DNA of 64,000 nucleotides from Macrostomum lignano (taxonomy: Eukaryota), in contig NIVC01000661.1 in NCBI GenBank assembly GCA_002269645.1, positions 62,001-126,000 of the forward strand, written 5' to 3'. The notes under the pieces are model-generated. The model did no database searches, was not told the origin of the DNA, and worked only from the letters and a program-made list of their open reading frames with translations. Positions 1 to 63,030 of this stretch are shown here, piece by piece. Each line of letters opens with the position of its first letter. Position 1 is the first letter of the stretch. Made by a program: the position numbers and the translations under genes.

Positions 1-830
1 ACCATAACAGACAGGCCATAGACACAATAACAGACAGGCCATAGACACCATAACAGACAGGCCATAGACACAATAACAGACAGGCCATAGACACCATAAC
101 AGACAGGCCATAGACACCATAACAGACAGGCCATAGACACAATAAGAGACAGGCCATAGACAAACTAAGAGACAGGCCATAGACACCATAACAGACAGGC
201 CATAGACACAATAACAGACAGGCCATAGACACAATAACAGACAGGCCATAGACACAATAACAGACAGGCCATAGACACCATAACAGACAGGCCATAGACA
301 CCATAACAGACAGGCCATAGACACAATAAGAGACAGGCCATAGACACAATAAGAGACAGGCCATAGAAACAATAACAGACAGGCCATAGACACCATAACA
401 GACAGGCCATAGACACCATAACAGACAGGCCATAGACACCATAACAGACAGGCCATAGACACCATAACAGACAGGCCATAGACACAATAAGAGACAGGCC
501 ATAGACACAATAAAAGACAGGCCATAGAAACAATAACAGACAGGCCATAGACACACTAACAGACAGGCCATAGACACAATAACAGACAGGCCATAGACAC
601 AATAACAGACAGGCCATAGACAAAATAACAGACAGGCCATAGACACAATAACAGACAGGCCATAGACACACTAACAGACAGGCCATAGACGCACTAACAG
701 ACAGACCATAGACGCACTAACAGACAGACCATAGACACAATAAGAGACAGGCCATAGACACAATAAGAGACAGACCATAGACACACTAACAGACAGGCCA
801 TAGACACAATAAGAGACAGGCCATAGACAA
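1..830. repeat. 23-bp minisatellite (ACCATAACAGACAGGCCATAGAC), probably intronic to the CPED1-like gene
   Basis: The unit is directly visible. The 23-aa periodicity of ORF 165..686 equals 3 units. Confidence 0.97.
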
Positions 831-906
831 CCTGAGACAGGCAACGATCAGCGCTTAAACATCAAGGCAGTCCCTCACCCCCAACCTCGGCAGCCTCGGC
901 CTTCAG

Positions 907-1242
907 GTGCCCGTCATCGTGAAGGACCTGAGCCCCGGATTTCACATTCGAGTACCCGGAGTGACCTACAAGCCACTGACAGTTGACACAGCCCGGGAGC
1001 TGTCCAACAGGAACAGCCAGCTGCACAGCATATCAGCCAGCCTGGGCTTCTCCATGCTGCCCACATTCCGCCTGTCCGCCGCCCGCTATCGCGAGTTTCA
1101 TCCCGGCAAGTGCGCCTGCCATTTTCACACCGTGACACCCCGGCAGAGGCGGCCAGGCCGCGACAGAGGCTTTGAAGTTGACGGCGACATTCACAGGACT
1201 TGCTTGGGCCTCTTGACTGCACTGTTGGACTCCGTGTTGTAG
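907..1242 (+). CDS. CPED1: Terminal exon of a CPED1-like (cadherin-like and PC-esterase domain) protein
   Basis: Follows acceptor cttcag|G and ends in TAG. VIVKDLSPGFH...ARYREFHPGKCACHFHTV...FEVDGDIHRTCLGLL matches my recollection of the CPED1 C-terminus (IIKTLGIGFH...GRYKEFLQGKCGCHFHEV...YHVRGPINQVCSEILL). The exact acceptor could lie slightly upstream. Confidence 0.75.
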   Translation: MPVIVKDLSPGFHIRVPGVTYKPLTVDTARELSNRNSQLHSISASLGFSMLPTFRLSAARYREFHPGKCACHFHTVTPRQRRPGRDRGFEVDGDIHRTCLGLLTALLDSVL

Positions 1243-1262
1243 GGATGAGAAGTTGAGACTGG

Positions 1263-3655
1263 CTGTCAAATTGTCACTGTTCAGTCACATTGTCACTGGC
1301 ACAGTCAAATTGTCACTGACACAGTCAAACTGACACTATAACAATCAAATTGTCACTGACACAGTCAAACTGACACTATAACAGTCAAATTGTCACTGGC
1401 ACAGTCAAATTGTCACTGGCACAGTCAAATTGTCACTGACACAGTCAAACTGACACTATAACAATCAAATTGTCACTGACACAGTCAAATTGTCACTGAA
1501 GCAGTCAAATTGTCACTGAAGCAGTCAAATTGTCACTGACACAGTCAAATTGTCACTAGAGCAGTCAAATTGTCACTGACACAGTCAAATTGTCACTGAA
1601 GCAGTCAAATTGTCACTGGCAACACTGGCACAGTCAAATTGTCACTGGCAACACTGGCACAGTCAAATTTCACTGCCACAGTCAAATTGTCACTTAAGCA
1701 GTCAAATTGTCACTAGAGCAGTCAAACTGTCACAGACACAGTCAAATTGTCCCTGGCACAGTCAAATTGTCACAGACACAGTCAAACTGTCACTGGCACA
1801 GTCAAATTGTCACTGGCACAGTCAAATTGTCACTGACACAATCAAACTGACACTAGAACAATCAAATTGTCACTGGCACAGTCAAATTGTCACTTAAGCA
1901 GTCAAATTGTCACTAGAGCAGTCAAATTGTCACAGACACAGTCAAATTGTCCCTGGCACAGTCAAATTGTCACTTAAGCAGTCAAATTGTCACTTAAGCA
2001 GTCAAATTGTCACTAGAGCAGTCAAATTGTCACAGACACAGTCAAATTGTCCCTGGCACAGTCAAATTGTCACAGACACAGTCAAATTGTCCCTGGCACA
2101 GTCAAATTGTCACAGACAAAGTCAAATTGTGACTGGCACAGTCAAATTGTCACTGGAGCAGTCAAATTTTCCCTGGCACAGTCAAATTGTCACTGGCACA
2201 GTCAAATTGTCCCTGGCACAGTCAAATTGTCCCTGGCACAGTCAAATTGTCACTGGCACAGTCAAATTGTCACTGGCACAGTTAAATTGTCACTGACACA
2301 GTCAAACTGACACTAGAACAATCAAATTGTCACTGGCACAGTGAAATTGTCACTGATACAGTCAAATTGTCACTGACAAAGTCAAATTGTCACTGACACA
2401 GTTAAATTGTCACTGGAACAGTCAAATTGTCACTGAAGCAGTCAACTTGTCACTGGCAACACTGGCACAGTCAAATTGTCACTGCCACAGTCAAATTGTC
2501 ACTGGCACAGTCAAATTGTCACTGGCACAGTCAAATTGTCACTGACACAGTCAAATTGTCACTAACATAGTCAAATTGTCACTGGCACAGTCAAATTGTC
2601 ACTGGCACAGTCAAATTGTCACTGGCACAGTCAAATTGTCACTGGCACAGTCAAATTGTCACTGGCACAGTCAAATTGTCACTGACACAGTCAAATTGTC
2701 ACTGGCACAGTCAAATTGTCACTGTTCAGTCACATTGTCACTGGCACAGTCAAATTGTCACTGACACAGTCAAACTGACACTAGAACAATCAAATTGTCA
2801 CTGGCACAGTGAAATTGTCACTGATACAGTCAAATTGTCACTGACAAAGTCAAATTGTCACTGACACAGTTAAATTGTCACTGGAACAGTCAAATTGTCA
2901 CTGAAGCAGTCAACTTGTCACTGGCAACACTGGCACAGTCAAATTGTCACTGCCACAGTCAAATTGTCACTGGCACAGTCAAATTGTCACTGGCACAGTC
3001 AAATTGTCACTGACACAGTCAAATTGTCACTAACATAGTCAAATTGTCACTGGCACAGTCAAATTGTCACTGGCACAGTCAAATTGTCACTGGCACAGTC
3101 AAATTGTCACTGGCACAGTCAAATTGTCACTGGCACAGTCAAATTGTCACTGACACAGTCAAATTGTCACTGGCACAGTCAAATTGTCACTGTTCAGTCA
3201 CATTGTCACTGGCACAGTCAAATTGTCACTGACACAGTCAAACTGACACTAGAACAATCAAATTGTCACTGGCACAGTGAAATTGTCACTGATACAGTCA
3301 AATTGTCACTGACAAAGTCAAATTGTCACTGACACAGTTAAATTGTCACTGGAACAGTCAAATTGTCACTGAAGCAGTCAACTTGTCACTGGCAACACTG
3401 GCACAGTCAAATTGTCACTGCCACAGTCAAACTGTCACTTGGCAACACTGGCACAGTCAAATTGTCACTTCTACAGTCAAATTGTCACTGGCACAGTCAA
3501 ATTGTCACTGGCACAGTCAAATTGTCACTGGCACAGTCAAATTGTCACTGACACAGTCAAATTGTCACTAACATAGTCAAATTGTCACTGGCACAGTCAA
3601 ATTGTCACTGGCACAGTCAAATTGTCACTGGCACAGTCAAATTGTCACAGGCAGT
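1263..3655. repeat. 20-bp minisatellite (GCACAGTCAAATTGTCACTG) with a 468-bp higher-order repeat
   Basis: The unit is visible. Identical ORFs at 2576..2764 and 3044..3232 give the 468-bp offset. Confidence 0.97.
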
Positions 3656-4140
3656 CAATATAATTTGCGAACCCCCATTATTTTCTTGAATGCTCTTTAA
3701 AAAGAAAAATTGCAATTTTCAGTAATACTTATCTGCAGTGTCAATATTTAGCGTTGAGAAGCAATTGACAGACAATTGACAGATTGGTAATCCCAGCTCG
3801 AGTAGGGACACAGCGCATTTCAACAATTATACTTAATTTTTGTTTTACTGAATAAAAATTCCTCTAAAATTCTGGAGACTCGTGAGAAGTGACCAGAATC
3901 CAATTCGCTAATGCATGACTTGAATGCGATGATTTCTGGGTCTTGTTCGACTCTATTGTGAGTGAGAGGCCTCTTATGAGAATTGAATAGAGAGGCCTCC
4001 AATGCTTTTGCAAGTGTATTTTCTACTGAGTAAAACTTGCCTTTAAAAATGGCTGTGACAGGCCAATATTGCTTTTCATTTTTTCATTTTTTTCTATCCG
4101 AATAAACATGGGTACCTCAGGCCTTTTGGGCTAAAAATTT

Positions 4141-5130: not shown

Positions 5131-5179
5131 TTGGGAAGAAGGGCCTGAATGTCAGGCCGTCTCCTAAGAAAAGATGGCG

Positions 5180-5520: not shown

Positions 5521-7371
5521 TTTGTGGGACAGGAAATGCTTCGCCTCAAGCCTGTCTGTCGCGGCAAAGTAGGGGTGGCTTAAACGATTTATGATGCAGC
5601 ACTTGAACCGATGCGGGATCAGTTTCGATTCTGGGAAAGCTGGGAAACTTCGTCTCCCCCCCCCCCTGAGTTGACTTGTGCCCCTGTCAAGCGACTGGTT
5701 CGCCAAGAATGAATAAGGAGCTTTAGAGTTCCCCTTCTAGTATGGGGCGTTGTCAGTCAGTAAACGAAATAAAGTCTAACAGGGTTTTTTTGCGAGTCGA
5801 AAAGAAATCAGCCGACAGCTCCCGACTCCTCATCGCATTCGCCGCTGCCCTCGCGCTTTCAATTTCTCTGCTCGGGCTTGAGCCGATCGACAGGTCACCG
5901 CTGGGCCCCGGAGAGCCCGGCTGAAATGCCGGACAAATTGGGGGGTCGGTGAGCAGGAAGAAGCCAGAGTGGTGATGAGGCGGCTGAGCTCTGGGAAGAG
6001 AGAATAGGGGATACAAGTAAGGCGGAGCGAGCGGCAAATGGAGGAGGCATGAAATGATGAGGAAAGCGAGTCCAGTTGCCGGTCAGAATTGGATAGAAGC
6101 GTGTGGGGCGGGGGGCTCGTGCGGCTGGCGTCGGCAGGGGAAATTCTGGGTCGGGAGGTCTCAGCAGGGGGCGGGAAGGCGCTCGCAGGTCGCTAGGGGG
6201 GGGGGGGTGGCGAGAGCACAGCGCGGCGGGAGGCCACCACCACTTTAATTTCTTTTTTTTTTGGCCAATTTAATTAATTTTCCCCGGGCACTTCTCCCCT
6301 GGCTACACATGCCCGACTTGGTCCTCGCGAGATGTCTGGGTTAAACTCCTCTCATCCGCTAAGACTTAGGCCGACATTAGAGAGCCTAGAGATCTCTCAC
6401 GAACTGTCCCTTGGCCCTCCGCTCGAGAAGCAGACTGTCTGACGCCGCTGGCGCATCCTGAGAAGTCGGCTGCACTGAGCAGTTTCCGAGCTGGAAGCTC
6501 ATGGGTCACCAGTTGCTCCCCAAGCTGTGCTGTCTGTCGCAGCTGGTTAAGTAGAGTGGCCCCGCCAACTCGTGTCCCATGAGAACTGGGCCGCTCTCTC
6601 TCTGGCTGATTGAATGAAAGATTTAGCCGAAGTGTTTGAGTAAAATGAAGTTTTTGCAACTAAAGGCCGGATGAATAAAGCGAGCAATTGCTCACGAGTA
6701 ACTGCTCCTGCTCTGAGTCTAACCATAACTTTTAGCAGATATCCATTGTACGAGCGTAGATCCGAAATACAATGTCCAAACCCATTTTGAGAAAAAACTG
6801 TAGGTGAGCAAGAGTACCTACAAGACCCCAATAAGTTTTGCTCAGGTCTACATGTACACTGCACAAATCCTGGTTTCTAATTTAATTTTCATCCAGCATT
6901 GTTAGGATCTCGGGACCCATTGTCGCTGAACACAGACCTGGCCTTGCTAAATAATGCAGACGAGTACGCAGGTCTGGATGTCGGCAGTCTAATAAATTAT
7001 CAGGCGGTTCCCAAGACTGCGCTGCGCTATGCAAGCAGGCTGGGGTGCACAAGAGCAATAACAATTAGTGGTGGGCTAACTGAGATTGATCCTATGCAGC
7101 TGGATCCTCCTTCACAGCCATGATGGCCAAACTGTTTCGGTAATGTATTTCAAGTAGAATTGAGGATCTTACAGTCGGCAGCACTTAGGCCCGTGCTGGC
7201 AGACACTGGCTTCGTCTCTTACTGCCCATCACTTTGCGATTTTCAGTCACGCAAGCAGATATAAACACACAGACCCTCTGCTTCACTTGTCATTTGTTAT
7301 TGACCTGAGACAGGTATGCTGTAAAAAGCTTCTTTTTCTGACAATAATCCTTCTGTGACGGTAGTCTATGC

Positions 7372-8438
7372 GCAGTCGTGGAGGGACCATAGACAGCACT
7401 GGTTGTGTCTGTGCGGAGTTGTGGAGGGACCATAGACAGCACTGGTTGTGTCTGTGCGGAGTTGTGGATGGACCATAGACAGCACTGGTTGTGTCTGTGC
7501 GCAGCTGTGGATGGACCATAGACAGCACTGGTTGTGTCTGTGCGGAGCTGTGGATTGACCATAGACAGCACTGGTTGTGTCTGTGCGGAGTTGTGGAGGG
7601 ACCATAGACAGCACTGGTTGTGTCTGTGCGGAGCTGTGGATGGACCATAGACAGCACTGGTTGTGTCTGTGCGGAGTTGTGGATGGACCATAGACAGCAC
7701 TGGTTGTGTCTGTGCGGAGCTGTGGATGGACCATAGACAGCACTGGTTGTGTCTGTGCGGAGTTGTGGATGGACCATAGACAGCACTGGTTGTGTCTGTG
7801 CGGAGCTGTGGATTGACCATAGACAGCACTGGTTGTGTCTGTGCGGAGTTGTGGATGGGCCATAGACAGCACTGGTTGTGTCTGTGCGGAGTTGTGGATG
7901 GACCATAGACAGCACTGGTTGTGTCTGTGCGGAGTTGTGGATGGACCATAGACAGCACTGGTTGTGTCTGTGCGGAGCTGTGGATGGGCCATAGACAGCA
8001 CTGGTTGTGTCTGTGCGCAGCTGTGGATGGACCATAGACAGCACTGGTTGTGTCTGTGCGCAGCTGTGGATGGACCATAGACAGCACTGGTTGTGTCTGT
8101 GCGGAGCTGTGGATTGACCATAGACAGCACTGGTTGTGTCTGTGCGGAGTTGTGGATGGGCCATAGACAGCACTGGTTGTGTCTGTGCGGAGTTGTGGAT
8201 GGACCATAGACAGCACTGGTTGTGTCTGTGCGGAGTTGTGGATGGACCATAGACAGCACTGGTTGTGTCTGTGCGGAGCTGTGGATGGGCCATAGACAGC
8301 ACTGGTTGTGTCTGTGCGGAGTTGTGGATGGGCCATAGACAGCACTGGTTGTGTCTGTGCGGAGTTGTGGATTGACCATAGACAGCACTGGTTGTGTCTG
8401 TGCGGAGTTGTGGATGGACCATAGACAGCACTGGTTGT
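7372..8438. repeat. 43-bp minisatellite (CCATAGACAGCACTGGTTGTGTCTGTGCGGAGTTGTGGATGGA)
   Basis: About 25 units with no spacers. The 43-aa periodicity appears in three overlapping ORFs. Confidence 0.97.
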
Positions 8439-8829
8439 GGTTATAGTTCAACAATTTTCTATAAATTCACTAAAAAGCGTATTAAATTCGCAAAAGTACA
8501 AAGAAAACACAACCCTCATCAATTTTTTCGTGTTTTTTTCCAACACCCCCTCCCTGTCCTCAAACTTCATCCTTAATAAACTACCTTATGCGATTCGAAT
8601 TGTATTCTGCTGGGCCAAGGGATATGGAACCTCGGATGCGGAGATGCCGACAGGATAATTAATTAGTCTATTTCGGACTGGGCCGGTGCAAAACGGTGGA
8701 GCAGGTGCAAAACGGTGATAACCATAATTAGGAAAATATTCAAGTCCCACTGCTTCTCATTTCTTTCCTGTACAGTAAGTATAGTTTAGCGAGTTGAATT
8801 TCTTGCCTATTGTAGTGGCTGCTGTGTCA

Positions 8830-8830
<1 letters not shown>

Positions 8831-8862
<32 letters not shown>
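8831..8862. repeat. (CT)n microsatellite
   Basis: Directly visible. Confidence 0.95.
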
Positions 8863-8866
<4 letters not shown>

Positions 8867-9389: not shown

Positions 9390-10485
9390 TCGCTCTAGTG
9401 TGTCTATATTGCGCTCTAGTGTGTCTATATTGCGCTCTAGTGTGTCTATATTGCACTCTAGTGTGTCTATATTGCGCTCTAGTGTGTCTATATTGCACTC
9501 TAGTGTGTCTATATTGCGCTCTAGTGTGTCTATATTGCGCTCTAGTGTGTCTATATTGCACTCTAGTGTGTCTATATTGCGCTCTAGTGTGTCTATATTG
9601 CGCTCTAGTGTGTCTATATTGCACTCTAGTGTGTCTATATTGCACTCTAGTGTGTCTATATTGCACTCTAGTGTGTCTATATTGCGCTCTAGTGTGTCTA
9701 TATTGCACTCTAGTGTGTCTATATTGCACTCTAGTGTGTCTATATTGCGCTCTAGTGTGTCTATATTGCGCTCTAGTGTGTCTATATTGCACTCTAGTGT
9801 GTCTATATTGCACTCTAGTGTGTCTATATTGCGCTCTAGTGTGTCTATATTGCGCTCTAGTGTGTCTATATTGCACTCTAGTGTGTCTATATTGCACTCT
9901 AGTGTGTCTATATTGCACTCTAATGTGTCTATATTGCACTCTAGTGTGTCTATATTGCACTCTAGTGTGTCTATATTGCGCTCTAGTGTGTCTATATTGC
10001 ACTCTAGTGTGTCTATATTGCACTCTAGTGTGTCTATATTGCACTCTAGTGTGTCTATATTGCACTCTAGTGTGTCTATATTGCACTCTAGTGTGTCTAT
10101 ATTGCACTCTAGTGTGTCTATATTGCGCTCTAGTGTGTCTATATTGCGCTCTAGTGTGTCTATATTGCACTCTAGTGTGTCTATATTGCACTCTAGTGTG
10201 TCTATATTGCACTCTAGTGTGTCTATATTGCACTCTAGTGTGTCTATATTGCGCTCTAGTGTGTCTATATTGCGCTCTAGTGTGTCTATATTGCGTTCTA
10301 GTGTGTCTATATTGCACTCTAGTGTGTCTATATTGCACTCTAGTGTGTCTATATTGCGCTCTAGTGTGTCTATATTGCGCTCTAGTGTGTCTATGTTGCA
10401 CTCTAGTGTGTCTATATTGCACTCTAGTGTGTCTATGTTGCACTCTAGTGTGTCTATATTGCACTCTAGTGTGTCTATGTTGCGC
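9390..10485. repeat. 21-bp minisatellite (CTCTAGTGTGTCTATATTGC[A/G])
   Basis: About 52 near-identical units. Confidence 0.97.
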
Positions 10486-10564
10486 CTAAGGCCAAATGTG
10501 TCTTTGCGGCATATGTTTTTTGACATTAAATGAGGCTTCGTGGCGCCGAGTGTGTCTTTCTGAA

Positions 10565-10920
10565 ACCAAATGTGTCTATTTAGCACCGAATGTGTCTGTT
10601 TGGCACCGAATGTGTCTATTTGGCACCGAATGTGTCTATTTAGCACCGAATGTGTCTATTTGGCACCGAATGTGTCTATTTGGCACCGAATGTGTCTATT
10701 TGGCACCAAATGTGTCTGTTTGGCACCGAATGTGTCTATTTAGCACCAAATGTGTCTGTTTGGCACCGAATGTGTCTATTTAGCACCAAATGTGTCTGTT
10801 TGGCACCGAATGTGTCTGTTTGGCACTGAATATGTCTATTTGGCACCGAATGTGTCTATTATTTCACACTGAATGTGTCTATTTAGCACTGAATGTGTCT
10901 GTTTGGCACCGAATGTGTCT
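10565..10920. repeat. 20-bp minisatellite (GCACCGAATGTGTCTATTT[A/G])
   Basis: Tandem units are visible. Confidence 0.93.
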
Positions 10921-11024
10921 CTACAGCACCCTATAAAATGTCTTAATACCACTAAAATGTCTCTGCACGAGCGGATACGGCACCCAAAATGTGATGACTC
11001 TCCAGCATGAGCTACCAGCAGCGC

Positions 11025-14000
11025 TCAGCATTGACTCTCGGTCCTGGCAAAAGGATTAAAACGTAGGGGATCGATCCGTGTTGGGGGTCGATTTCCAATT
11101 AGGCCAAGTCCCAGAGATAAAAGAAATACATTTTTGAAGCCTTCTTTGAGCAAAGAGTAATCAATTTTTGGGGAAGATCAACTGACTGGATTAGAATTGA
11201 AGATTAGTGAAGCTGAGGCTCTGGGCGGCACATCATTCGATAGGCTGATGCTGATGGAGACTTTTGATGGAGAGCGTAGTTGCAATTTTCATCCGAATTT
11301 GCGTAATTACCATGCATACCCATAGAGCATGAGACTGCGCCCAAAGAGCATGAGACTGCGCCCATAGAGCATGAGACTGCGCCCATAGAGCATGAGACTG
11401 CGCCCAAAGAGCATGAGACTGCGCCCATAGAGCATGAGACTGCGCCCAAAGAGCATGAGACTGCGCCCATAGAGCATGAGACTGCGCCCATAGAGCATGA
11501 GACTGTATCCATAGAGTATGAGACTGTACCCATAGAGTATGAGACTGTACCCATAGAGTATGAGGCTGTTATCATAGAGTATGAGGCTGTAACCATAGAG
11601 TATGAGGCTGCACCCATAGAGTATGAGACTGCACCCATAGAACAACAAGAGATTAAATTCAAGAGAGAATACCTAAGAGATGATACCCAATAGATAATAC
11701 CTAAGGGACAGTACCCAAGAGACGATACTCAAGAGAGAATACCCAAGAAATAATTCTCAATTAAGAGACTGTTACCCATCAAAAGCTTTCTACAAGGAAA
11801 TGAACTAAAAAGATACCTTAGAGGTGCTGGATCAGACACCGTAGCCTTCAAAAAAGTTACCCACCAGAAAATACCCATCGATGGTACTCCCAATGGAAGG
11901 TACACGCATAAGATGAAAGACTCGAACAACAAGTACAGAATTTATATTAAAATTTCTTCAATAGTCGCATGTTTTTCTTTATTAATAGTAATAACAATAA
12001 TTATCGAAAAGTCACACTGCACACCTCAGCTGATATCACATGTTCTCCATCAAAATCAGTTCAGAAATGAGCAGCTGGATGAAGAGATCGGCTTCATCAC
12101 CCTCCGCATCGGGTAGGGCTTGCCATACCGGGTCTCCCTGGGCTGCGGCATCTGCCCGGAGTGCCTGCGGCGCCACTGCTCCGACGCCATCTTGAGCAGC
12201 CGGGCGCGTTCAACCGGGTCCAGTGAGGACACCTTCTTCTGCGCCTCGATTACGTACTCGGCGTCGGAGATCATCGAGCTGAGGTCCGAGCCGGCGGCTG
12301 AGTCAGCGCCGCTCTTCGGGCGCCGGTGTTCCGGCAGCTGGCTGAGCAGCAGGTCGTATAGCTGCAGCATCTCCCGCTTGCTGCTGATGAAGCTGTAGCT
12401 GGCGGGCAGGCAGCAGGGGAACCTGCCGCAGGGGGAGCCGTCGGAGCCAGCAAACTGGCAGCTGGGAGCCGGCTGCGGCTGCTGCTTCTGCTGTTGCTGT
12501 TGCTGCTTCTGGAAGGAGAGGAGCATGGCCAGTTAAAGACACTGTGGCGCCCGATTTTAGAGAGTGGCGCCAAAGTTTAGACACTTGCGCCTAATTTGCG
12601 ACAGTGGCGCCCGATTTTAGACAGTGGCGCCCAATTTTAGACTCTGGAACCCAATTTTAGACTCTGTGGCGCCCAATTTTAGACTCTGGCGCCCAATTTT
12701 AGACTCTGGCGCCCAATTTTAGACTCAGTGGCGCCCAATTTTAGACTCTGTGGCGCCCAATTTTAGACTCTGTGGCGCCCAATTTTAGACTCTGTGGCGC
12801 CCAATTTTAGACTCTGTGGCGCCCAACTTTAGACTCTGTGGCGCCCAACTTTAGACTCTGGAACCCAATTTTAGACTCTGTGGCGCCCAATTTTAGACTC
12901 TGGCGCCCAATTTTAGACTCTGGCGCCCAATTTTAGACTCTGGCGCTCAATTTTAGACTCTGTGGCGCCCAATTTTAGACTCTGGGGCGCCCAATTTTAG
13001 ACTCTGTGGCGCCCAATTTTAGGCTATCAAATTATGATTTGTTTTTCATGCAAATTTTATGACCTTTGCTGCCAGGACGAGCTCAAACTCTCGGGGCTCC
13101 TCTTGGAGTTTTTTCCCATCGAAACCAAAATAGCCAATTGGATTTTTCCCAATAACAGTTTGTCAAGCAGCCACTGCCGTCAGAGCCCTGGGACCACTTG
13201 ATCCCAGCGAGGGTTGCAGTGGAGGTTTTGATTACGTAATACTGGCTGCATTTTTATGAGCCATGAATTCATTCACATCTGAGGCTTTGGCGAGTGGATC
13301 TCTAGCAAATCTAAAAATAATTTCTTATATATCTAACAACGGTGTCTAACAGATCTAACAACTGTGTCTAACAGATCTAACAACTGTGTCTAACAGATCT
13401 AACAACTGTGTCTAACAGATCTAACAACTGTGTCTAACAGATCTAACAACTGTGTCTAATCGATCTAACAACTGTGTCTAACAGATCTAACAACTGTGTC
13501 TAACAGATCTAACAACTGTGTCTAATAAATCTAACAACGGTGTCTAACAGATCTAACAACTGTGTCTAACAGATCTAACAACTGTGTCTAACAGATCTAA
13601 CAACTGTGTCTAATAAATCTAACAACGGTGTCTAACAGATCTAACAACTGTGTCTAACAGATCTAACAACTGTGTCTAACAGATCTAACAACTGTGTCTA
13701 ATAAATCTAACAACGGTGTCTAACAGATCTAACAACTTTGTCTAATAGATCTAACAACTGTGTCTAACAGATCTAACAACTGTGTCTAACAGATCTAACA
13801 ACTGTGTCTAACAGATCTAACAACTGTGTCTAACAGATCTAACAACTGTGTCTAACAGATCTAACAACTGTGTCTAACAGATCTAACAACTGTGTCTAAC
13901 AGATCTAACAACGGTGTCTAACAGATCTAACAACTGTGTCTAATCGATCTAACAACTGTGTCTAATAGATCTAACAACTGTGTCTAACAGATCTAACAAC

Positions 14001-14668
14001 GGTGTCTAACAGATCTAACAACTGTGTCTAATAGATCTAACAACTGTGTCTAACAGATCTAACAACTGTGTCTAACAGATCTAACAACTGTGTCTAACAG
14101 ATCTAACAACTGTGTCTAACAGGTTTATCAACTGTCTCTAACTGATCGAAAAATCTTATCTAACATTTTCAATAGGTCTAACAGGTCGAACGCAACTCAC
14201 GTGACTTCCCAGCTGCCCCGCCTCCGCAGCCGCCGCTGCCGCCGCCTCCTCGTCCGCCATCAGCTGTCGCTGCCGATCCGCCTGCGGCGCGAACACCGAC
14301 AGCGGCCTTCGCTGCCGCGGCCGTCGTCGTCGACCCGTTGTCGCTTCGACGACGTCGCCGAGCCCGGCCGGCAGGCTGTCCAGCTGCCGTCGACGCTGCG
14401 CTGAACTGACGGCCCTCGGCCGGCCGCCGCTGATGGCCGGCACGTCGATGACACTGTCCGACAGGGCGAGGCCGGACAGCGCCAGCTGCCGCTCCGCCTG
14501 TCGAAATTCGCGCCTGCGCGCCACGTCGCGCCGATCTTCGACTGCGCGCAGTTCGGAGAGTTCGCGCGCCAGCCGGTTCGACTCCATCTCGGCGCGGCGC
14601 TGGGCGCCGAGCATCGTCTGCGAGGTCTTCTTCTGCAGCTTGCGAAGGCTCTCCGTGGTCAGCGGCAT
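11025..14668 (-). CDS. Uncharacterised coiled-coil / low-complexity protein (multi-exon)
   Basis: Exon 14668-14201 starts at ATG (MPLTTESLRKLQKK...GQLGSH) and ends at donor GTGAGT. It splices in phase 0 to exon 12508-12129 (acceptor ctcctctccttccag; KQQQQ...ETR; donor gtatgg). A tentative last exon is 11043-11025 (acceptor ccttttgccag, TESQC-stop). The 5' end and last exon are uncertain. Confidence 0.65.
11320..11640. repeat. 21-bp minisatellite (CCATAGAGCATGAGACTGCGC)
   Basis: Tandem units with gradual drift along the array. Confidence 0.93.
12540..13020. repeat. 20-22-bp intronic minisatellite (TGGCGCCCAATTTTAGACTC[TG])
   Basis: Tandem units start about 30 nt from the exon acceptor. Confidence 0.95.
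13325..14122. repeat. 22-bp intronic minisatellite (CTAACAGATCTAACAACTGTGT)
   Basis: Tandem units are visible. Confidence 0.96.
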
Positions 14669-14684
14669 GGCCTGGGTGGCTGCC

Positions 14685-15300
14685 TGGCTGTCCTTGGTGT
14701 CTGCCTGGCTGTCCTTGGTGTCTGCCTGGCTGTCTGTCTGTCTGTCTGCCTGGCTGTCCTTGGTGTCTGCCTGGCTGTCTGTCTGTCTGTCTGCCTGGCT
14801 GTCCTTGGTGTCTTCCTGGCTGTCCTTGGTGTCTGCCTGGCTGTCTGTCTGTCTGTCTGCCTGGCTGTCCTTGGTGTCTTCCTGGCTGTCCTTGGTGTCA
14901 GCCTGGCTGTCTGTCTGTCTGTCTGCCTGGCTGTCCTTGGTGTCTGCCTGGCTGTCCTTGGTGTCTGCCTGGCTGTCTTTGGTGTCTGCCTGGCTGTCCT
15001 TGGTGTCTGCCTGGCTGTCTGTCTGTCTGTCTGCCTGGCTGTCCTTGGTGTCTGCCTGGCTGTCTGTCTGTCTGTCTGCCTGGCTGTCCTTGGTGTCTTC
15101 CTGGCTGTCCTTGGTGTCTGCCTGGCTGTCTGTCTGTCTGTCTGCCTGGCTGTCCTTGGTGTCTGCCTGGCTGTCCTTGGTGTCTGCCTGGCTGTCTTTG
15201 GTGTCTGCCTGGCTGTCCTTGGTGTCTGCCTGGCTGTCTGTCTGTCTGTCTGCCTGGCTGTCCTTGGTGTCTGCCTGGCTGTCTGTCTCTCTGTCTGTCT
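14685..15300. repeat. 21/24-bp minisatellite (TGTCTGCCTGGCTGTCCTTGG with TGTC variants)
   Basis: Tandem units, all multiples of 3 nt, in frame with the downstream exon. Confidence 0.93.
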
Positions 15301-15842
15301 GTGTGCCTGTCTTTCGATCTATTCTGTCCACCTTTCCAGTCTGCCCAAAAGCTTTGAAAAAAATTCTATATAAAATTTTTCATCATCAAGCCGCACTCTC
15401 AAGCCCCCACACCCCGTTACTGTGCGGTTGCTAAGCTCTGACCTGTGCAGAGACTTGGACTGCTTGAGCTTCATTTTACAAAGCCCTGAGCCTCTCGCTG
15501 CCCACTTTCCTGTCTGTCGCCCACCCCAGTTTCATAAATGCCTTCATTCTGGGCCCGCAGGAGTCTCAGCTGCCTCTCAGCCAGGTGCACAAAGGCTGGG
15601 CGATTATAAGTGCGCAGCCCAGGTGTACAATCGGACAATGGAGCAGCACTCTGACCCGCAGTGAGTTAACATTTTTCTATGCTTCTTAATAGCTGATTGT
15701 CATTAAAAATATGCAGAACAGACTACTTCAAGTGGAAAAAATAGAGTCAAAGTACAGTGCCGATTTGACACTTAGCTATGTCAGCACTTTGACACTATTA
15801 ATGTCAGTTCAGTTGACACTAATTATTAATTATGTCAGTAAT

Positions 15843-38377: not shown

Positions 38378-39404
38378 GACAGAAATCCTGACTAGTTATG
38401 TACAAGTCTTTCCACAATATAATTGAAAAAATCACTGAAACTCAAATTAGAGTTATGTGGCAATACTTAGAATCTAGAAAACTGTCCTTAAGAAACTGTT
38501 ATAATAGAATGTTGGGGTCAGGGATTGCTGCTTTATCATTAAGAGTGTGTGATTATCTGCATAATACAATTTGTCACAAGATGGTTTAAAAAATCAGATT
38601 GTCTCAGTATGGCAATGCATTATGCAGAGAGATCACACAATCAATTAATGAATTACAATGGCAAATAACAATAAATAGATAAATATGCATTACAGATTAT
38701 GTTATCCGTAACAAGTTTTGGTTTGACTAGTATATTTATATGTTTTCTAACAGCTAGATAAATAAATATACATATTAACATAGGTTAAGACTCTAGTTTA
38801 CACTCTGCAAACATTCTAGTTCTAACTTCACTTAAAAGATAGATTTATTTATATGTTTTAACTTTGATGTCTTTTTATAACAACTATGATATTTCTCTTT
38901 CATTTGATTTATACTATTAATTAGCATTCCCACTGGGGAGCCAACAAAGAATGCAATGTTTTTGAATAACTATATATATAGCTTCTGGACTCTTAGCCTT
39001 AATATACTAGTAATTTTTTTCTATCAACTAGTAGTAGTAGTTATACCTTAATCCATATTCAATGCAAATGTTGATTTATAAAATCAGTCTTTGAAAACAT
39101 AGCTTATAACATTTGCCATTATGGGCAATTAATAATAATTTTTTCTATGAGCTTCCTAAGACTTGCCAATATGTATAGAATAGTTAATTTGAATAAAAAG
39201 GCTTTTTGCAAATAAGTAACTTAGTGGTGCACTTTTATAAAATAAAATTTAATACATATATATAAATCAGAAAAAAGAAAATATATATTTTCATAAAGAA
39301 AAAAATTTACTTGGCTTTTATTGACATAATAACATTAAGATAATTGACAAACTATATAATCTTTTCCATAATTTACCTATTTTAATTAGGCCTAGGAAAT
39401 GCTT

Positions 39405-47100: not shown

Positions 47101-47684
47101 TCAGCTGCTGGGCCAGCCTCCCAGATCCCCAGTTGCTGGGCCAGCCTCCCAGATCCCCAGTTGCTGGGCCAGCCTCCCAGATCACCAGTTGCTGGGCCAG
47201 CCTCCCAGATCTCCAGTTGCTGGGCCAGCCTCCCAGATCCCCAGTTGCTGGGCCAGCCTCCCAGATCACCAGTTGCTGGGCCAGCCTCCCAGATCCTCAG
47301 CTGCTGGGCCAGCCTCCCAGATCTTCAGCTGCTGGGCCAGCCTCCCAGATCCCCAGTTGCTAAGCCAGCCTCCCAGATCCCCAGTTGCTGGGCCAGCCTC
47401 CCAGATCCTCAGCTGCTGGGCCAGCCTCCCAGATCTTCAGCTGCTGGGCCAGCCTCCCAGATCCGCAACTCTCACCAATACCATCTCGCGCAACCCGAAC
47501 CCGTGTCCGCAGCTACCGCCCTTCCGTGCCGCTGTCCCATCTTCAATCCCAGCTGGGTTTCGTCGATGCCGAGTCCTGTCAGAAATTTCTGACATCCTCC
47601 GGCGTGCCAGCCGCGGCCATAGACAGCGCAGCGGGCGTCCTGGACTGTCGGGTCTGCGCACTCGCCGCCATCTCGTCTGCGTGA
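44108..47684 (+). CDS. LENG8: LENG8 / THP3 (SAC3/GANP family) homologue
   Basis: Exons are 44108-44370, 44719-~44890 (donor uncertain), ~44976-45710, 46382-46650, 46733-46940 and 47513-47684 (TGA). Motifs: SWPPDLWEYIERVY...IDWSTEPL, IVGTSTKLEKEYLRLTSAPDPATVR, CEQFKAIRQDLTVQGIR, EFNQCSSQLRSLY, FADRERLVALKAMVKAYRP. Confidence 0.95.
44465..44700. repeat. 21-bp intronic minisatellite (ATACCCACTATCCAATACC[AG/CC])
   Basis: Tandem units in LENG8 intron 1. Confidence 0.92.
45790..46325. repeat. 24-bp intronic minisatellite (GACACTGGAGGTCATTGGGTCATA)
   Basis: Tandem units in a LENG8 intron. Confidence 0.94.
46990..47465. repeat. 28-bp intronic minisatellite (CTGGGCCAGCCTCCCAGATCCTCAGTTG), LENG8 last intron
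   Basis: Same family as MUS81 intron 1. Confidence 0.95.
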
Positions 47685-47842
47685 TCCAAGTTATGCAAGC
47701 TCCTATTTTATTGATTTTACTATAATTTTTATTGCGCTAAGAATAATTTAAAGTAATTTGGTAACTTTTCCTGTACCCTAAATCGTAAGAATCATTAAAA
47801 TCTGACATTGAGAAGTTTTTTCAGGTTATTTTATCTGTAATT

Positions 47843-47950
47843 AAACACACAGTGTCTGTAATGAAACATACAGTGTCTGTAACGAAACATACAGTGTCTG
47901 TAATGAAACATACAGTGTCTGTAATGAAACATACAGTGTCTGTAATGAAA
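47843..47950. repeat. 21-bp repeat x5 (ATGAAACATACAGTGTCTGTA)
   Basis: Directly visible. Confidence 0.88.
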
Positions 47951-48364
47951 CAATCACGATCTGTAGTGAAACCTTCATGATTTTTATTTGTCAATAAAGC
48001 TTTAAAATCTGCATTAGAAGTTTCATTCTTCAATCTATATTTAAAAGGGCATAGTGTACTTTATATTGTTGCATACTTTTGCGCTTTTAAGGCATTTCAA
48101 GACGCGCGCTACAGATTTTCATTGTAATTCACTTTTTCTTGCGTGGTGGCTGCTGACCGACCAACCGGTACAAGAGTCAAACATTAAATACACTTTTTGT
48201 TTAGGCCTTGCAATTAGCTTAATATCACTGGAACTGGCTGTACTCTACAACTCAAACGCAACGAAAGCTTTGTCTATTCATTTTTTAATACACAATGAGC
48301 AATCTGTAGCGAAAACTTGATCAACGGTGTGCATTTTCGTCTAATCTACGAACTTATTTACTTT

Positions 48365-49966: not shown

Positions 49967-50400
<434 letters not shown>

Positions 50401-51108
50401 CCTTATTTCTGTCCGTCGTCTTTCCATTCTTTGTACTGTCTGAGCTTTTCCTTAAAATCTCGGGATGCTCAATTGCCTCCTCGATCAATATCTTATATTG
50501 AAAAATCCGTAGCTTCATATCTAAATGCTTTCAAAGCTCTCCAGTGCTGTCATTTTTATGATTTAAAGCACTATTTAGCACCTAAAGCAGTACATTTATA
50601 AACTAGAAATTATAACTACAATAATTTACTAAGCTCAAGGCATATAGAAGTTCTGTCTCTATAACGTATCGCCAGTTTGAAAGCTTTAATTTCCACGCAC
50701 GATCTTACTATCAGCCTCCGTAATTAGCTATAATTCCCATAAAAATATGGCTGCATTTAGGTCTTACGGATGCTGAGTAACAAAGTGCAGCTGCATCATC
50801 ATCATCATCATCAGAATCCTCATCAAATAAACGGTTGCAATTGTGCACAGGGGATTAGCTGCGGCTCAGATATTCAGGACTTAATCTGCATCTGCATGAC
50901 TGACATCTACATAGCCATCCCGTCTCCCATTATAGCTGATCCCGCTGCTTGTTCTGATGGGGCGCAGCGCACGCAGGGTCAGATTATATAAAAAACTGGC
51001 TGCCAATGCACAGCGTGAGCTCATTTTGCGAGAGCTCAGCAGGCAGTACTGGGCACAGATACTATAAATACTATAGTATCTATATCTATCTATCTATAGT
51101 GTTTATAG

Positions 51109-51621
51109 TATTGGTTTTGTCAGCCTAACTGAGAATAAAGCCATCCAAAGTGAGAATCCTGCCTACGCTGACTGCGAAGGGCCTGGCTGCGTGCAGCCTT
51201 AGTCTATGGGCCATAGACTATAGAGGACAAGCAAAGTGATAAAAAGCCATCCAAAGTGAGAATCCTGCCTACGCTGACTGCGAAGGGCCTGGCTGCGTGC
51301 AGCCTTAGTCTATGGGCCGTAGACAATAAAGGACAAGCAAAGTGATAAAAAGCCATCCAATGTGAGAATCGATTGGTCTATGCGTCGTATTCTTTTATTT
51401 TTATACCTTCTGAGCCATATGACTAGCCAATAGCTTGAACGGAATAACGGAAACAGGAACACACTGGATGATACAGTACAGTAAAGTAAAGAGTTAAAAT
51501 CCTAGACTCATATGGCACATACAGTAGACTAGGCTGGACGCAGCTAGGCCCTTCGTATTCAGCGTAGGCAGGATTCTCACTTTGGATGGCTTTATTCTCA
51601 GTTAGGCTGACAAAACCAATA
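51109..51621. mobile_element. TA-flanked MITE with ~95-bp TIRs and an internal ~113-bp tandem duplication
   Basis: TA-TTGGTTTTGTCAGCCTAACTGAGAATAAAGCCATCC...GGATGGCTTTATTCTCAGTTAGGCTGACAAAACCAA-TA. Confidence 0.82.
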
Positions 51622-53968: not shown

Positions 53969-53999
<31 letters not shown>

Positions 54000-54667: not shown

Positions 54668-55595
54668 ATAAGCACACACTGGCACAGGCAGGCAGATTGA
54701 TAAGCACACACTGGCACAATTGCAGGCAGACTGATAAGCACACACTGGCACAATTTCAGGCATACTGATTAAGCGCACACTGGCACAGGCAGGCAGATTG
54801 ATAAGCACACACTGGCACAGGCAGGCAGATTGATAAGCGCACACTGGCACAGGCAGGCAGACTGATAAGCACACACTGCCACAATTTCAGGCAGACTGAT
54901 AAGCACACACTGGTACAATTGGTACAATCACAGGCAGGCAGATTGATAAGCACACACTGGCACAGGCAGGCAGATTGATAAGCACACACTGGCACAGGCA
55001 GGCAGATTGATAAGCGCACACTGGCACAGGCAGGCAGACTGATAAGCACACACTGCCACAATTTCAGGCAGACTGATAAGCACACACTGGTACAATTGGT
55101 ACAATCACAGGCAGGCAGATTGATAAGCACACACTGGCACAGGCAGGCAGATTGATAAGCACACACTGGCACAAGCAGGCAGATTGATAAGCACACACTG
55201 GTACAGGCAGGCAGATTGATAAGCACACACTGGCACAATTGCAGGCAGATTGATAAGCACACACTGGCACAAGCAGGCAGATTGATAAGCACACACTGGC
55301 ACAAGCAGGCAGACTGATAAGCACACACTGGCACAGGCAGGCAGATTGATAAGCGCACACTGGCACAGGCAGGCAGATTGATAAGCACACACTGGCACAA
55401 GCAGGCAGATTGATAAGCACACACTGGCACAAGCAGGCAGACTGATAAGCGCACACTGGTACAGGCAGGCAGATTGATAAGCACACACTGGCACAAGCAG
55501 GCAGATTGATAAGCACACACTGGCACAGGCAGGCAGATTGATAAGCACACACTGGCACAAGCAGGCAGATTGATAAGCGCACACTGGCACAGGCG
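54668..55595. repeat. 32-bp minisatellite (GCACACACTGGCACAGGCAGGCAGATTGATAA)
   Basis: Tandem units are visible. Confidence 0.96.
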
Positions 55596-58805: not shown

Positions 58806-59639
58806 GTTCAATTATCAATAACAGGTGAGGTAACAGGTGACTCATGATCAGGTTTCCTTAGCCTAAATGCTAGCTAAGTGAGGGTTTATTCCTCAAACGG
58901 GTACTTTTAGATGTAAGAATAGGCAAGGATAGAGAGGGGGAGAGAGGGATAGTGTTACATTAATCAGTGAGCAAAGTAGACACGCATGTACATGCAGAGA
59001 TGGAAAGTGAGTAGCCGGTGCTGAGACACTTATCTGGGTGACTCAGCATATCGCACAAGAGAGATATTAGCAGGTTTCGCAAAAAACAATCACAAATTCT
59101 GTGAGCATAGCTTATCAATAGAAAATATGTCAGCAAATAGGACTCAACCGTGCAAGTGCGGGATGCCTGGAGAGCCGGCCTCCAGCTACATGCAGGAGTA
59201 TTATGCGAACAGACTCAAGTGGTTCGTTCAGCCATCCCGAGGGAGCAGAGCGAGAGGCCGCTCAGCACAGAGTGAGGCCCTGAGGCTGCCCGTCGCAGTC
59301 GCTAGCAATTTGCCAATGCATCTCACTCTGCTGTCTCACGGCCGTGCATTTTCCGCGCGCGTACAAGAGGGCATCATCTCGCCCAGCCTCACTGCGTCTA
59401 TGCAGGTTGCTCCATCACTCCCAGCTCCCTCTTGTCCTTTGCGCCCAGCCAAGCTTGCTGTTGTTCTTGTATTCAGCTCGATTTTGAGCACTTTGATAGA
59501 TGATTTTTCATCAACTGACATGCCGCTCCCGCAGTTCAGCTTCAGTATCTGGGAGAGGAAAACTACCAGACTTATACCGGTGAAAGAAGGTCATAGCCAG
59601 ATCACCGTCAGGTCATATTATCATAAAACTGACACATTA

Positions 59640-60240
59640 ATTTCTGTCCATAGACACATCAAACATTATTCAGTCATAGACACATCAAACTGACACATTA
59701 TTCAGCCATAGACACATCAAACTGACACATTATTCAGCCATAGACACATCAAACTGACACATTATTCAGCCATAGACACATCAAACTGACACATTATTCA
59801 GCCATAGACACATCAAAATGACACATTATTCAGCTATGAGACACATCAAGCTGACACATTATTCAGCTATGAGACACATCAAGCTGACACATTATTCAGC
59901 CATAGACACATCAAACTGACACATTATTCAGTCATAGACACATCAAACTGGCACATTATTCAGTCATAGACACATCAAACTGACACATTATTCAGTCATA
60001 GACACATCAAACTGACACATTATTCAGTCATAGACACATCAAACTGACACATTATTCAGTCATAGACACATCAAACTGACACATTATTCAGCCATAGACA
60101 CATCAAACTGACACATTATTCAGTCATAGACACATCAAACTGGCACATTATTCAGTCATAGACACATCAAACTGACACATTATTCAGTCATAGACACATC
60201 AAACTGACACATTATTCAGTCATAGACACATCAAACTGAC
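59640..60240. repeat. 32-bp minisatellite (ACTGACACATTATTCAGCCATAGACACATCAA), block 1
   Basis: Tandem units are visible. Confidence 0.96.
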
Positions 60241-61139
60241 TGGATTAGCTCTGCCTAAAAGTGCATCAGTTAAATCCAGTCCTAGTCGAAAAGCCCGAAA
60301 ACAATAAAATTCTGACAGTCTCTGAAAATGTCAGTTGAAAAGCACAGAACGCCAAACAGACAGACAATCAAGTGACATTGGGCCATTCAGATTCGGAATG
60401 GAACAGAAAATAAAACGCGACTTTTTTATTGCATTTGCTTGAGACAATGGCTGCAGGAAATTCCGCTGTCAGTAAAAGGGACCTGTTTAGCTGGGGAGAA
60501 AAACTTCCCCATCTAATATTAGGAAGAATTTCAGATTGTGGCAAGTTCGCTCCGCCAGCATCCACTGGATAGAGCAGAGCACATAGTGAAACCCCATCTC
60601 AAGTCTGAAATCTGCACATATCCCAGAAACCGACAGAAGTTTTGTCCGCTCGAATGGAGCGAGCAAAATCCCTGAACAAGATATTGCAAACCCAGCAACT
60701 CTCCCTGGCCTGGGTGCATCAGATGATGCTGCATGGGATAAGGCTGGGATTTCTTAGAATTGATGAAGATTGCTCTGCTATTGGGGAGTTGAGAGACAGT
60801 CAGTCCATTTGTATAGAGGCTGACTGGTTGCTTTCAAGCACTGACTTCTCTTAGATGAAATCTGAAATGCTTCGAAAGTGTCTCGTTTCGGCAAACAGCT
60901 TCCTTTGCGCCTCATCACTTGGCAAAATGAGTTTGGTAAGTCTGGCTTGAGCCGACTTGCTTTTGTGTGTTCAGGCAAGAGCTTGTTTAAACTGCGTGTT
61001 GAATTCATGATTTCGTAGGATTTGAATAGATGAAAGCTATGAATAGAATGAATAGATGAATTCCATAGATGAAAGCTATGAATAGAATGAATAGATGAAT
61101 TCCATAGATGAAAGCTATGGACTGGCATCACTCATAGGC

Positions 61140-63030
61140 ACACCGAACTGACACATTATTCAGTCATAGACAGATCAAGCTGACACATTATTCAGCCATA
61201 GACACATCAAACTGACACATTATTCAGCCATAGACACATCAAACTGACACATTATTCAGTCATAGACACATCAAGCTGACACATTATTCAGCCATAGACA
61301 CATCAAGCTGACACATTTTTCAGCCATAGACACATCAAACTGACACATTATTCAGCCATAGACACATCAAACTGACACATTATTCAGCCATAGACACACC
61401 GAACTGACCCATTATTCAGCTATAGACACATCAAGCTGACACATTATTCAGCCATAGACACATCAAACTGACCCATTATTCAGCTATAGACACATCAAAC
61501 TGACACATTATTCAGCTATAGACACATCAAACTGACAAATTCTTTAGTCATAGACACACCGAACTGACACATTATTCAGCTATAGACACATCTGACTTAC
61601 ACATTATTCAGTAATAGACACATCAAGCTGACACATTATTCAGCCATAGACACATCAAGCTGACACATTATTCAGCCATAGACACACCGAACTGACCCAT
61701 TATTCAGCTATAGACACATCAAGCTGACACATTATTCAGCCATAGACACATCAAACTGACACATTATTCAGCCATAGACACATCAAACTGACACATTATT
61801 CAGCCATAGACACATCAAACTGACACATTATTCAGCTATAGACACATCAAACTGACAAATTCTTTAGTCATAGACACACCGAACTGACACATTATTCAGC
61901 TATAGACACATCTGACTTACACATTATTCAGTAATAGACACATCAAACTGACACATTATTCAGCCATAGACACATCAAACTGACACATTATTCAGCCATA
62001 GACACACCGAACTGACCCATTATTCAGCCATAGACACATCAAACTGACACATTATTCAGTCATAGACACATCAGACTGACCCATTATTCAGCCATAGACA
62101 CACCAAACTGACACATTATTCAGCCATAGACACATCAAACTGACACATTATTCAGTCATAGACACACCGAACTGACACATTATTCAGCCATAGACACATC
62201 AAACTGACACATTATTCAGCCATAGACACATCAAACTGGCACATTATTCAGCCATAGACACATCAAACTGACACATTATTCAGCCATAGACACATCAAAC
62301 TGACACATTATTCAGCCATAGACACATCAAACTGACACATTATTCAGCCATAGACACATCAAACTGACACATTATTCAGCCATAGACACATCAAACTGAC
62401 ACATTAATCAGCCATAGACACATCAAACTGACAAATTCTTTAGTCATAGACACACCGAACTGACACATTATTCAGCTATAGACACATCAGACTTACACAT
62501 TATTCAGCCATAGACACACCGAACTGAAACATTATTCAGCCATAGACACACCAAACTGACACATTATTCAGCCATAGACACATCAAACTGACACATTATT
62601 CAGCCATAGACACATCAAACTGACAAATTCTTTAGTCATAGACACACCGAACTGACACATTATTCAGCTATAGACACATCAGACTTACACATTATTCAGC
62701 CATAGACACATCAGACTTACACATTATTCAGCCATAGACACACCAAACTGACACATTATTCAGCCATAGACACACCAAACTGACACATTATTCAGCCATA
62801 GACACATCAGACTGACCCATTATTCAGCCATAGACACATCAAACTGACACATTATTCAGCCATAGACACATCAAACTGACAAATTCTTTAGTCATAGACA
62901 CACCGAACTGACACATTATTCAGCTATAGACACATCAGACTTACACATTATTCAGCCATAGACACACCGAACTGAAACATTATTCAGCCATAGACACACC
63001 AAACTGACACATTATTCAGTAATAGACACA
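61140..63030. repeat. 32-bp minisatellite, block 2 (same family as 59640-60240)
   Basis: Tandem units are visible. Confidence 0.96.

Follow-up and report, generated by a model that had tools for sequence, protein, structure and literature searches.

An eight-nucleotide A-rich core shared by otherwise unrelated minisatellites in a 64 kb neighbourhood of the Macrostomum lignano genome

Introduction

Why should minisatellites that differ in unit length, and in most of their sequence, contain the same short word? The question is raised by a 64 kb stretch of Macrostomum lignano DNA (contig NIVC01000661.1, positions 62,001 to 126,000; hereafter the window, in whose own numbering all positions are given), a single genomic neighbourhood to which all in-window results below refer. 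Tandem Repeats Finder (TRF) returned 95 rows for the window, which reduce to 48 non-overlapping arrays with a total length of 27.1 kb or 42% of the sequence, the remainder being occupied by animal genes and one retroelement, with no tRNA found; simple and tandem repeats have been reported to make up 15% of the M. lignano genome (PMC5730564). An earlier reading of the sequence, the original prediction, had proposed that many of these arrays contain a core of about 8 nt serving either as a seed that nucleates array expansion, like a chi-type minisatellite core, or as a tag for repeat-binding proteins. The analysis presented here supports the view that the core, ATAGACAC, is special and that descent of whole units is insufficient as an explanation. 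We tentatively posit, at a probability of roughly 0.4, that it is a cis-acting element favouring array expansion or homogenisation.

Distribution of the core word

The word ATAGACAC (8 nt; extended form (C)ATAGACAC(A)) occurs 174 times in the window, with 112 copies on the forward and 62 on the reverse strand, against an expectation of 2.3 from dinucleotide shuffles of the whole window. All but one of these copies (173/174) lie inside arrays of five families with units of 23, 21, 20, 24 and 32 bp, and the remaining copy sits at an array edge. Clusters are found at 18–807 (29 copies, 23 bp unit), at 9400–10882 (62 copies on the reverse strand, spanning the arrays 9393–10483 and 10541–10920 with units of 21 and 20 bp, respectively), at 45966–46324 (8 copies, 24 bp unit) and at 59650–60229 and 61198–63029 (17 and 58 copies, 32 bp unit). 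The preceding base is C, T or A and never G. When related arrays are collapsed into 32 families, five carry the exact word and five more a variant with one mismatch, so that about one third (10/32) have the core in some form (Table 1). The variants are ATAGACAG in the 43 bp array, TTAGACAC in the 22 and 17 bp arrays, ATAGAGAC in two 21 bp arrays of one family and ACAGACAC in a third 21 bp array. Every array named in the original prediction is present at its place in the non-redundant TRF list, the exact core in the five unit lengths is borne out by the counts above, and the close variants were located as described, each one mismatch from ATAGACAC.

Two of the exact-core families are not uniform along their length. 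The 24 bp array (45818–46326) has the exact core in its distal half only, and the 32 bp arrays are one family divided by an 892 bp non-repeat segment (60241–61132), possibly inserted into the array. The 3' end of this segment is itself a perfect 39 bp × 2.4 repeat (61026–61119) rich in ATAGATGAA. The 23 bp array is cut by the start of the window.

Core sharing exceeds chance and composition

Copy counts within an array are not independent, and consensus units were therefore tested. In a set of 35 consensus units, no other k-mer is as widely shared as the core words at any k from 6 to 10 (AGACAC in 10 arrays, GTGTCTA in 8 and ATAGACAC in 6); these counts were matched by 0/2000 shuffles, and the sharing also holds for the 32 collapsed families under mono- and dinucleotide-preserving shuffles. 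Families with the exact word number 5 versus 0.03 expected, and those with a one-mismatch variant 5 versus 0.64 expected (P=0.0004). Under the strictest collapse, in which array 10541 is joined to 9393 and array 4 to 61133 to give 30 lineages, the best 8-mer at no more than one mismatch is still ATAGACAC, found in 8 lineages (P=0.001). A reversed-unit control was uninformative because reversal keeps the sharing intact.

The word is also cryptically simple, with A at each second base, and could in principle be one of many (AN)n words that degenerate microsatellites produce, picked out post hoc. Consistent with such an artefact, ATAGACAC is an (AN)4 word, a run of (AN)≥4 is present in 12 of the 32 families, AGAC-type microsatellites occur in the window, and A stands at alternate positions flanking the word (~0.5) in 56 distinct metagenome arrays. 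The A-phasing called for a null in which only the variable letters of A-phased runs are permuted; here one (AN)4 word reached five families in 0/20000 permutations and four families in 44/20000, and no other (AN)4 word is found in more than two of the observed families. The maximum-statistic tests, which cover every k-mer, allow for post hoc choice as they stand, and we consider an artefact of this kind scarcely credible.

The excess of sharing is confined to this one word. Family pairs with any common 7-mer number 62 compared to 26–31 in shuffles, and fall to 32 once core-derived words are removed, which is the chance level; a single word thus explains the entire excess, and the arrays do not form a general patchwork of related segments. 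Chance and general composition are rejected as the source of core sharing, and the comparison with shuffled controls that the original prediction had called for on a genome-wide scale, run here on in-window units, places ATAGACAC above the shuffles in every null. Sharing of other words is overall at chance level. One such word is the 10 nt CACTGGCACA, common to a 20 bp array at 1265–3653 (122 copies) and a 32 bp array at 54668–55594, which are 51 kb apart; CACTGG is also found immediately 3' of the core in arrays 7364 and 45818.

Descent and remodelling of the arrays

Local alignment of doubled units finds only 9–12 bases common between core-bearing families. With the core as anchor and the remaining parts of the units aligned, 24 of 28 pairs reach no significance, the others being 9393/10541 (P=0.019), 45818/61133 (P=0.018), 25367/45818 (P=0.039) and 4/61133 (P=0.045). 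Judged from these alignments, common descent of whole units can be rejected for all but the neighbouring 21 and 20 bp arrays and the two blocks of the 32 bp family. The original prediction had described the arrays as unrelated and had named simple descent, visible as full-length alignment, as the alternative. No full-length alignment was found and units outside the core are at shuffle level, which upholds the description for most arrays; it does not extend to 9393 and 10541, which are related by descent. These two arrays are 57 bp apart, and both the spacer and the sequence after 10920 hold decayed units (10484–11040) in which A(A)TGTGTCT is retained and the other bases differ. They are clearly one lineage that was remodelled in place.

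Remodelling of this sort invites an explanation by neutral history only, in which the core arrays would stem from one local ancestral repeat, a degenerate (ACAG)n, whose remainder was replaced block-wise (for example by new units formed from array edge and flank, or by spreading indels), leaving the core as a chance survivor. The 21/20 bp lineage with its decayed intermediates and the 4 of 28 anchored comparisons below P=0.05 fit such a history, as do duplications within the window that have relocated arrays (28985/36411; 37585/47000, inverted; and 19672–20852 versus 30653–31797). A metagenome contig (L114) offers a parallel in two adjacent arrays that have TTATAGACA and GGTGGG in common. What speaks against neutral history is that 8–12 nt are perfect in 4–5 lineages while the other 12–24 nt are at shuffle level, an outcome very unlikely under uniform neutral change, and that most core arrays are non-adjacent with unrelated flanks. 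The lower variability of the core within arrays and the greater homogeneity of core arrays (see below) also count against it. We regard neutral history alone as the one other serious reading, somewhat less probable than a cis-acting core.

Homogeneity and variability within arrays

Arrays with an exact or near core have TRF matches of 78–97% (median ~92), compared to 71–95% (median 85) in the others, and are thus more homogeneous (one-sided Mann-Whitney P=0.014). Within arrays, wrap-around alignment to the consensus gives variant bases at 1.7% for the eight core positions and 5.0% elsewhere, with the lower rate at the core in 9 of 11 arrays. As variants within an array are not independent, the core window was ranked among all 8 nt windows of the unit, and its mean variability percentile was 0.29 across 12 arrays (P=0.005) and 0.31 with one array per lineage (P=0.021). 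The core looks retained, and core-bearing arrays look younger or more actively homogenised.

Probable simple-sequence origin and occurrence in metagenomes

The word ATAGACAC is two substitutions from (ACAG)2. TRF detects a (TCTG)107 array and (TGTC)n runs in the window, and the 23 bp unit is largely A-phased, with ACAGACAG adjoining ATAGACAC, which together point to an origin of the word in (ACAG)n. Independent derivation would not be expected to repeat two identical substitutions in 4–5 lineages, so that the word must have been either inherited or favoured.

Metagenome contigs searched for three cores at spacings of 17–47 bp yielded at least 120 loci, mostly on different eukaryote-derived contigs, a number that carries no claim of enrichment. 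The sequences recovered suggest that the word generally arises in degenerate (AC/AG/AT)n-like sequence. Positions 1–1192 of one contig (L088; Ga0056125_1008444) consist entirely of a 21-mer, (GTGTGTCTATAGTCACCTGTA)57, that has the same period as the window array 9393–10483 and 75% identity to it, with 11 nt around the core and GTGTGTCTATA identical; the extra conservation flanking the core is non-significant after ascertainment (0.20, our own calculation). This hints that the array family, or the core, may be present in a related genome. A literature search for the core motif returned primers and unrelated matches only.

Evaluation of a possible cis-acting core

A cis-acting core explains the sharing of one word, its restriction to arrays, its low variability and the higher homogeneity of the arrays that carry it. 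We posit that units with the core would be preferentially duplicated or homogenised, with misalignment, break repair or gene conversion initiated at or near the word, so that core arrays would turn over faster and the word would be kept while the remaining unit was free to change. The word itself was probably born once or a few times from regional (ACAG/GACA)n simple sequence, and would then have reached further arrays as older ones were remodelled or 'budded' locally, together with local segmental duplication. Promotion of expansion or homogenisation by the word, its (ACAG)n origin and the involvement of any protein are what we infer from these patterns.

Several observations weigh against a cis-acting core. 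The tests of homogeneity and within-array conservation are post hoc, involve about 10 arrays and reach modest significance; for the four exact-core lineages the percentile of the core window is 0.30 with P=0.086, and in arrays 45818 and 25367 the core is more variable than the rest of the unit. Neighbouring arrays have a shared history in the case of 9393/10541, and may have one in 4/61133 and 45818/61133, as the alignments of their remainders suggest. In metagenomes ATAGACAC is frequent in the tandem repeats of numerous unrelated contigs of eukaryotic origin, in A-phased low-complexity sequence, and is therefore easily generated. To our knowledge no enzyme or binding protein is known for the word. 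Array ends are not consistently placed at the core, nor do solitary ATAGACAC seeds occur beyond chance outside arrays: the 36.3 kb left unmasked by TRF contain one copy, at an array edge, versus 1.3 expected (zero-order), as well as 7 copies of AGACAC versus 17 expected, and other core sub-words are not above expectation.

The inconsistent array ends count against a slippage-seed model in which the array is bounded by the core, and for the same reason the core is not evidently a slippage microhomology. Combined with the lack of solitary seeds they disfavour simple slippage nucleation between pre-existing copies, and that lack does not favour nucleation at dispersed sites already present. The broader idea of the original prediction, an expansion-promoting core, fares better, in that sharing, homogeneity and low core variability all fit; its chi likeness does not.

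Table 1. Core-bearing arrays, related simple sequence, mobile elements and genes in the window
Feature	Position	Strand	Description
23 bp minisatellite ATAACAGACAGGCCATAGACACA	1–829	+	~36 copies, 94% matches; exact core GCCATAGACACA on +
43 bp minisatellite	7364–8439	+	25 copies, 96% matches; one-mismatch core CCATAGACAG on +; also ACAGACAC on -
21 bp minisatellite CTCTAGTGTGTCTATATTGCA	9393–10483	-	52 copies, 97% matches; exact core TATAGACACAC on -
20 bp minisatellite TGGCACCGAATGTGTCTATT	10541–10920	-	19 copies, 86% matches; exact core on -
22 bp minisatellite (2 × 11 bp subrepeat)	13331–14147	-	37 copies; one-mismatch core TTAGACAC on -
21 bp array interleaved with (TGTC)n	14671–15312	-	GGCAGACACC on -; AGAC-type simple sequence beside minisatellite units
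17 bp degenerate array	25367–25550	+	11 copies, 78% matches; one-mismatch core TTAGACAC on +; antisense in MUS81-like intron
21 bp array	28985–29545	-	27 copies; one-mismatch core ATAGAGAC on -; sense in MUS81-like intron
21 bp array	36411–37164	-	36 copies; ATAGAGAC on -; family and orientation as 28985–29545
24 bp array, 29 bp variant at its end	45785–46326	+	~21 copies; exact core TCATAGACAC on +
21 bp array	47834–47952	-	5.7 copies; one-mismatch core ACAGACAC on -
(TCTG)107, i.e. (CAGA/ACAG/GACA)n on the opposite strand	49972–50401	-	Candidate source; two substitutions from core
32 bp array, first block of split family	59650–60240	+	18 copies, 97% matches; exact core (C/T)CATAGACACAT
32 bp array, second block of split family	61133–63030	+	59 copies, 90% matches; exact core
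Non-long-terminal-repeat (non-LTR) retrotransposon, degenerate (APE endonuclease and reverse transcriptase)	15846–17937	-	65% GC; open reading frames broken into several frames; 3' end (TTG)4
Element like a miniature inverted-repeat transposable element (MITE)	51112–51620		Terminal inverted repeats (TIRs) of ~90–100 bp (51112–51200 versus 51520–51620); internal 106 bp × 2.2 duplication
MUS81-like gene	24442–38395	-	Exons: HhH 38009–38395, winged helix 26713–27357, ERCC4 nuclease 24442–25113
SAC3/GANP (LENG8-like) gene	~44.1–47.7 kb	+	
Fibronectin-type-II exon	63326–64000	-	

Mobile elements near the arrays

The arrays might instead have been carried or generated by a mobile element, the core being its recognition sequence, such as a transposase subterminal site, the 3' tail repeat of a long or short interspersed nuclear element (LINE or SINE) primed by reverse transcriptase, or part of an internal array of a Helitron or MITE. 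There is precedent in molluscs for MITEs and Helentrons that carry tandem repeats (PMC3879986, PMC7492417). Within the window the non-LTR retrotransposon adjoins an AGAC-rich array, with its (TTG)n end ~500 bp from the array, and the MITE-like element holds a palindrome, GTCTATGGGCCATAGAC. The closest named relatives of the retrotransposon's reverse transcriptase are those of M. lignano (60–67%), and anonymous metagenome copies reach up to 84%. Protein searches with this reverse transcriptase, a MUS81-like exon and a SAC3 exon gave no other named matches; the remainder were anonymous metagenome sequences on contigs either short or unrelated, one of which (L123) is a GC-rich alga-like orthologue.

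An origin of the core arrays in a LINE 3' tail is rejected, as the tail is (TTG)n in the window element and in a 76%-identical relative. Transposon-borne arrays are likewise rejected: flanks of the core arrays have no mutual homology, no dispersed homology and no words in common, neither TIRs nor direct repeats occur there above shuffle level, and target-site duplications were not found at the core arrays. The arrays are hence not copies of one mobile element. They also fill introns directly between splice sites, to ~20 nt from the acceptor, and a mobile origin appears highly improbable to us. As a separate observation, the palindrome of the MITE-like element is an inverted pair of CCATAGAC, which resembles the first part of the core.

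Host genes and array orientation

Ordinary introns in the window are ~50 bp long (e.g. 46652–46700), whereas those that hold minisatellites range from 0.5 to more than 5 kb. In the SAC3/LENG8-like gene the intron 45712–46346 measures 635 bp, of which the 24 bp core array fills 85%, with the core in sense. The exon spacing of the MUS81-like gene, with array-filled introns between, stretches this gene over at least 14 kb. Core orientation relative to the transcript is mixed in the few genes of known orientation, being sense in the SAC3/LENG8-like intron and for ATAGAGAC in two MUS81-like introns, and antisense for TTAGACAC at 25367; this agrees with the earlier remark that several arrays, though not all, read in the host sense direction.

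With several arrays intronic, and the exact core sense in one intron, the core could be a recognition tag for a DNA- or RNA-binding factor, with arrays kept as they concentrate the site. Such a site might be a box of the chromatin or centromere type, an insulator, or a motif for splicing or RNA binding within introns. A 19 bp box in Meloidogyne tandem repeats (PMC8097292) is a precedent, intronic minisatellites are reported to be linked to splicing motifs (PMC4039745), and the low variability of the core within its units also fits. Set against this, the word is not enriched outside arrays, orientation to the transcript is mixed, and the word lacks dyad symmetry. The window also contains no Rfam family, and its nine one-mismatch matches to the CENP-B box TTCGNNNNANNCGGG versus 4.8 expected, none of them in arrays, amount to no excess. 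A recognition tag is in our estimation quite unlikely.

A more far-reaching version of the cis-acting core would make CATAGACACA a genome-wide element that seeds and drives minisatellite expansion and inflates ~50 bp introns to kilobase arrays, for instance where a sequence-specific nickase or recombination factor acts on it, or where it serves as a holocentromere-like box for a repeat-binding protein. We consider this wider role unlikely.

Further features of the gene-borne arrays were observed. The MUS81-like introns hold at least 8 different minisatellites, including a 3.6 kb array of a 23 bp unit at 31782–35370. The ~1.2 kb inverted duplication of 19672–20852 and 30653–31797 has an identity of 74–89%, and its second copy lies within a MUS81-like intron and adjoins an interstitial telomere-type (CCCTAA)12 detected by TRF at 30877–30950. 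One 28 bp array family occurs in inverted copies at 37585–38050 (MUS81-like intron, reverse strand) and 47000–47464 (SAC3/LENG8-like intron, forward strand); because the two genes are on opposite strands, its orientation relative to transcription is alike in both. That strand of the family is stop-free in all frames, giving long open reading frames with a common peptide repeat beginning ASLPDPQLLGQPPRSS. On the reverse strand of 14156–15331, a GC-rich open reading frame flanks the 21 bp array that contains (TGTC)n and shares its frame; the TDSQADTK-type peptide repeat of the array runs on into coding-like sequence outside the repeat. The array could in part be coding.

Comparison with known systems

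Human hypervariable minisatellites reportedly share a G-rich, chi-like core of 10–15 bp, GGGCAGGANG, described by Jeffreys, Wilson and Thein in 1985. As in the window, arrays of differing unit length and otherwise unrelated sequence there have one short core in common, which was proposed to promote recombination or expansion. The two cores differ in that the human one is G-rich and ATAGACAC, from an invertebrate-like metazoan, is A-rich and A-phased; the window contains no match to GGGCAGGANG. The chi-type likeness put forward in the original prediction does not hold at the level of sequence, where the core resembles neither chi nor the Jeffreys core.

Two general concepts are also relevant. 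Satellite DNA can persist as a library of sequences, with arrays remodelled in place, and the 21/20 bp arrays with their decayed intermediates, together with the locally duplicated arrays, fit a picture of arrays begetting arrays. Under a neutral library, similarity between units should be graded along their entire length, whereas here it is limited to one word. Bkm-type repeats consist of GATA/GACA simple sequence; the long (GACA)n-type microsatellite (TCTG)107 is comparable, and the core resembles a GATA-GACA junction. They differ in being tetranucleotide runs, compared to complex units of 17–43 bp here, and in the base before ATAGACAC, which is never G in the arrays; (GATA)n runs are essentially absent from the window, in which (TCTG)107 and (TGTC)n are present.

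CenH3-associated tandem repeats of Meloidogyne have divergent monomers with a conserved 19 bp box that is ~80% GC and dyad-forming (PMC8097292). The likeness lies in short arrays in unrelated surroundings, with divergent monomers and one conserved box inferred to be under constraint (PMC8097292). The core here differs in its length (8–12 nt), its GC content (37–40%), the lack of a dyad and the location of its arrays in introns of expressed-type genes; read from the sequence, CATAGACACA is 40% GC and not self-complementary. In other nematode satellites, conserved motifs including CENP-B box-like ones are proposed to promote array rearrangement (PMC3694981), a similar case of a short conserved monomer motif seen as a driver of array rearrangement and spread. 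Compared to those satellites, the arrays in the window show no CENP-B box-like enrichment, have far smaller units and have junctions that are not clearly at the core.

The core is closest in behaviour to the Jeffreys core and the conserved nematode satellite boxes, and it fails the sequence-level features of both. We would class it as a further core word, new in sequence and in lineage, under the already known minisatellite core principle.

Significance

Should the word reflect shared history only, the window would be a clean illustration of block-wise array remodelling, with limited general interest. If the core does promote the birth or turnover of arrays, it would be a second, unrelated case of the 'minisatellite core' principle. 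Annotation would benefit as well, since arrays split genes here, as in the MUS81-like gene. The word would then offer a sequence-defined handle on how minisatellites originate and spread in an animal genome whose introns and spacers they make up in large part.

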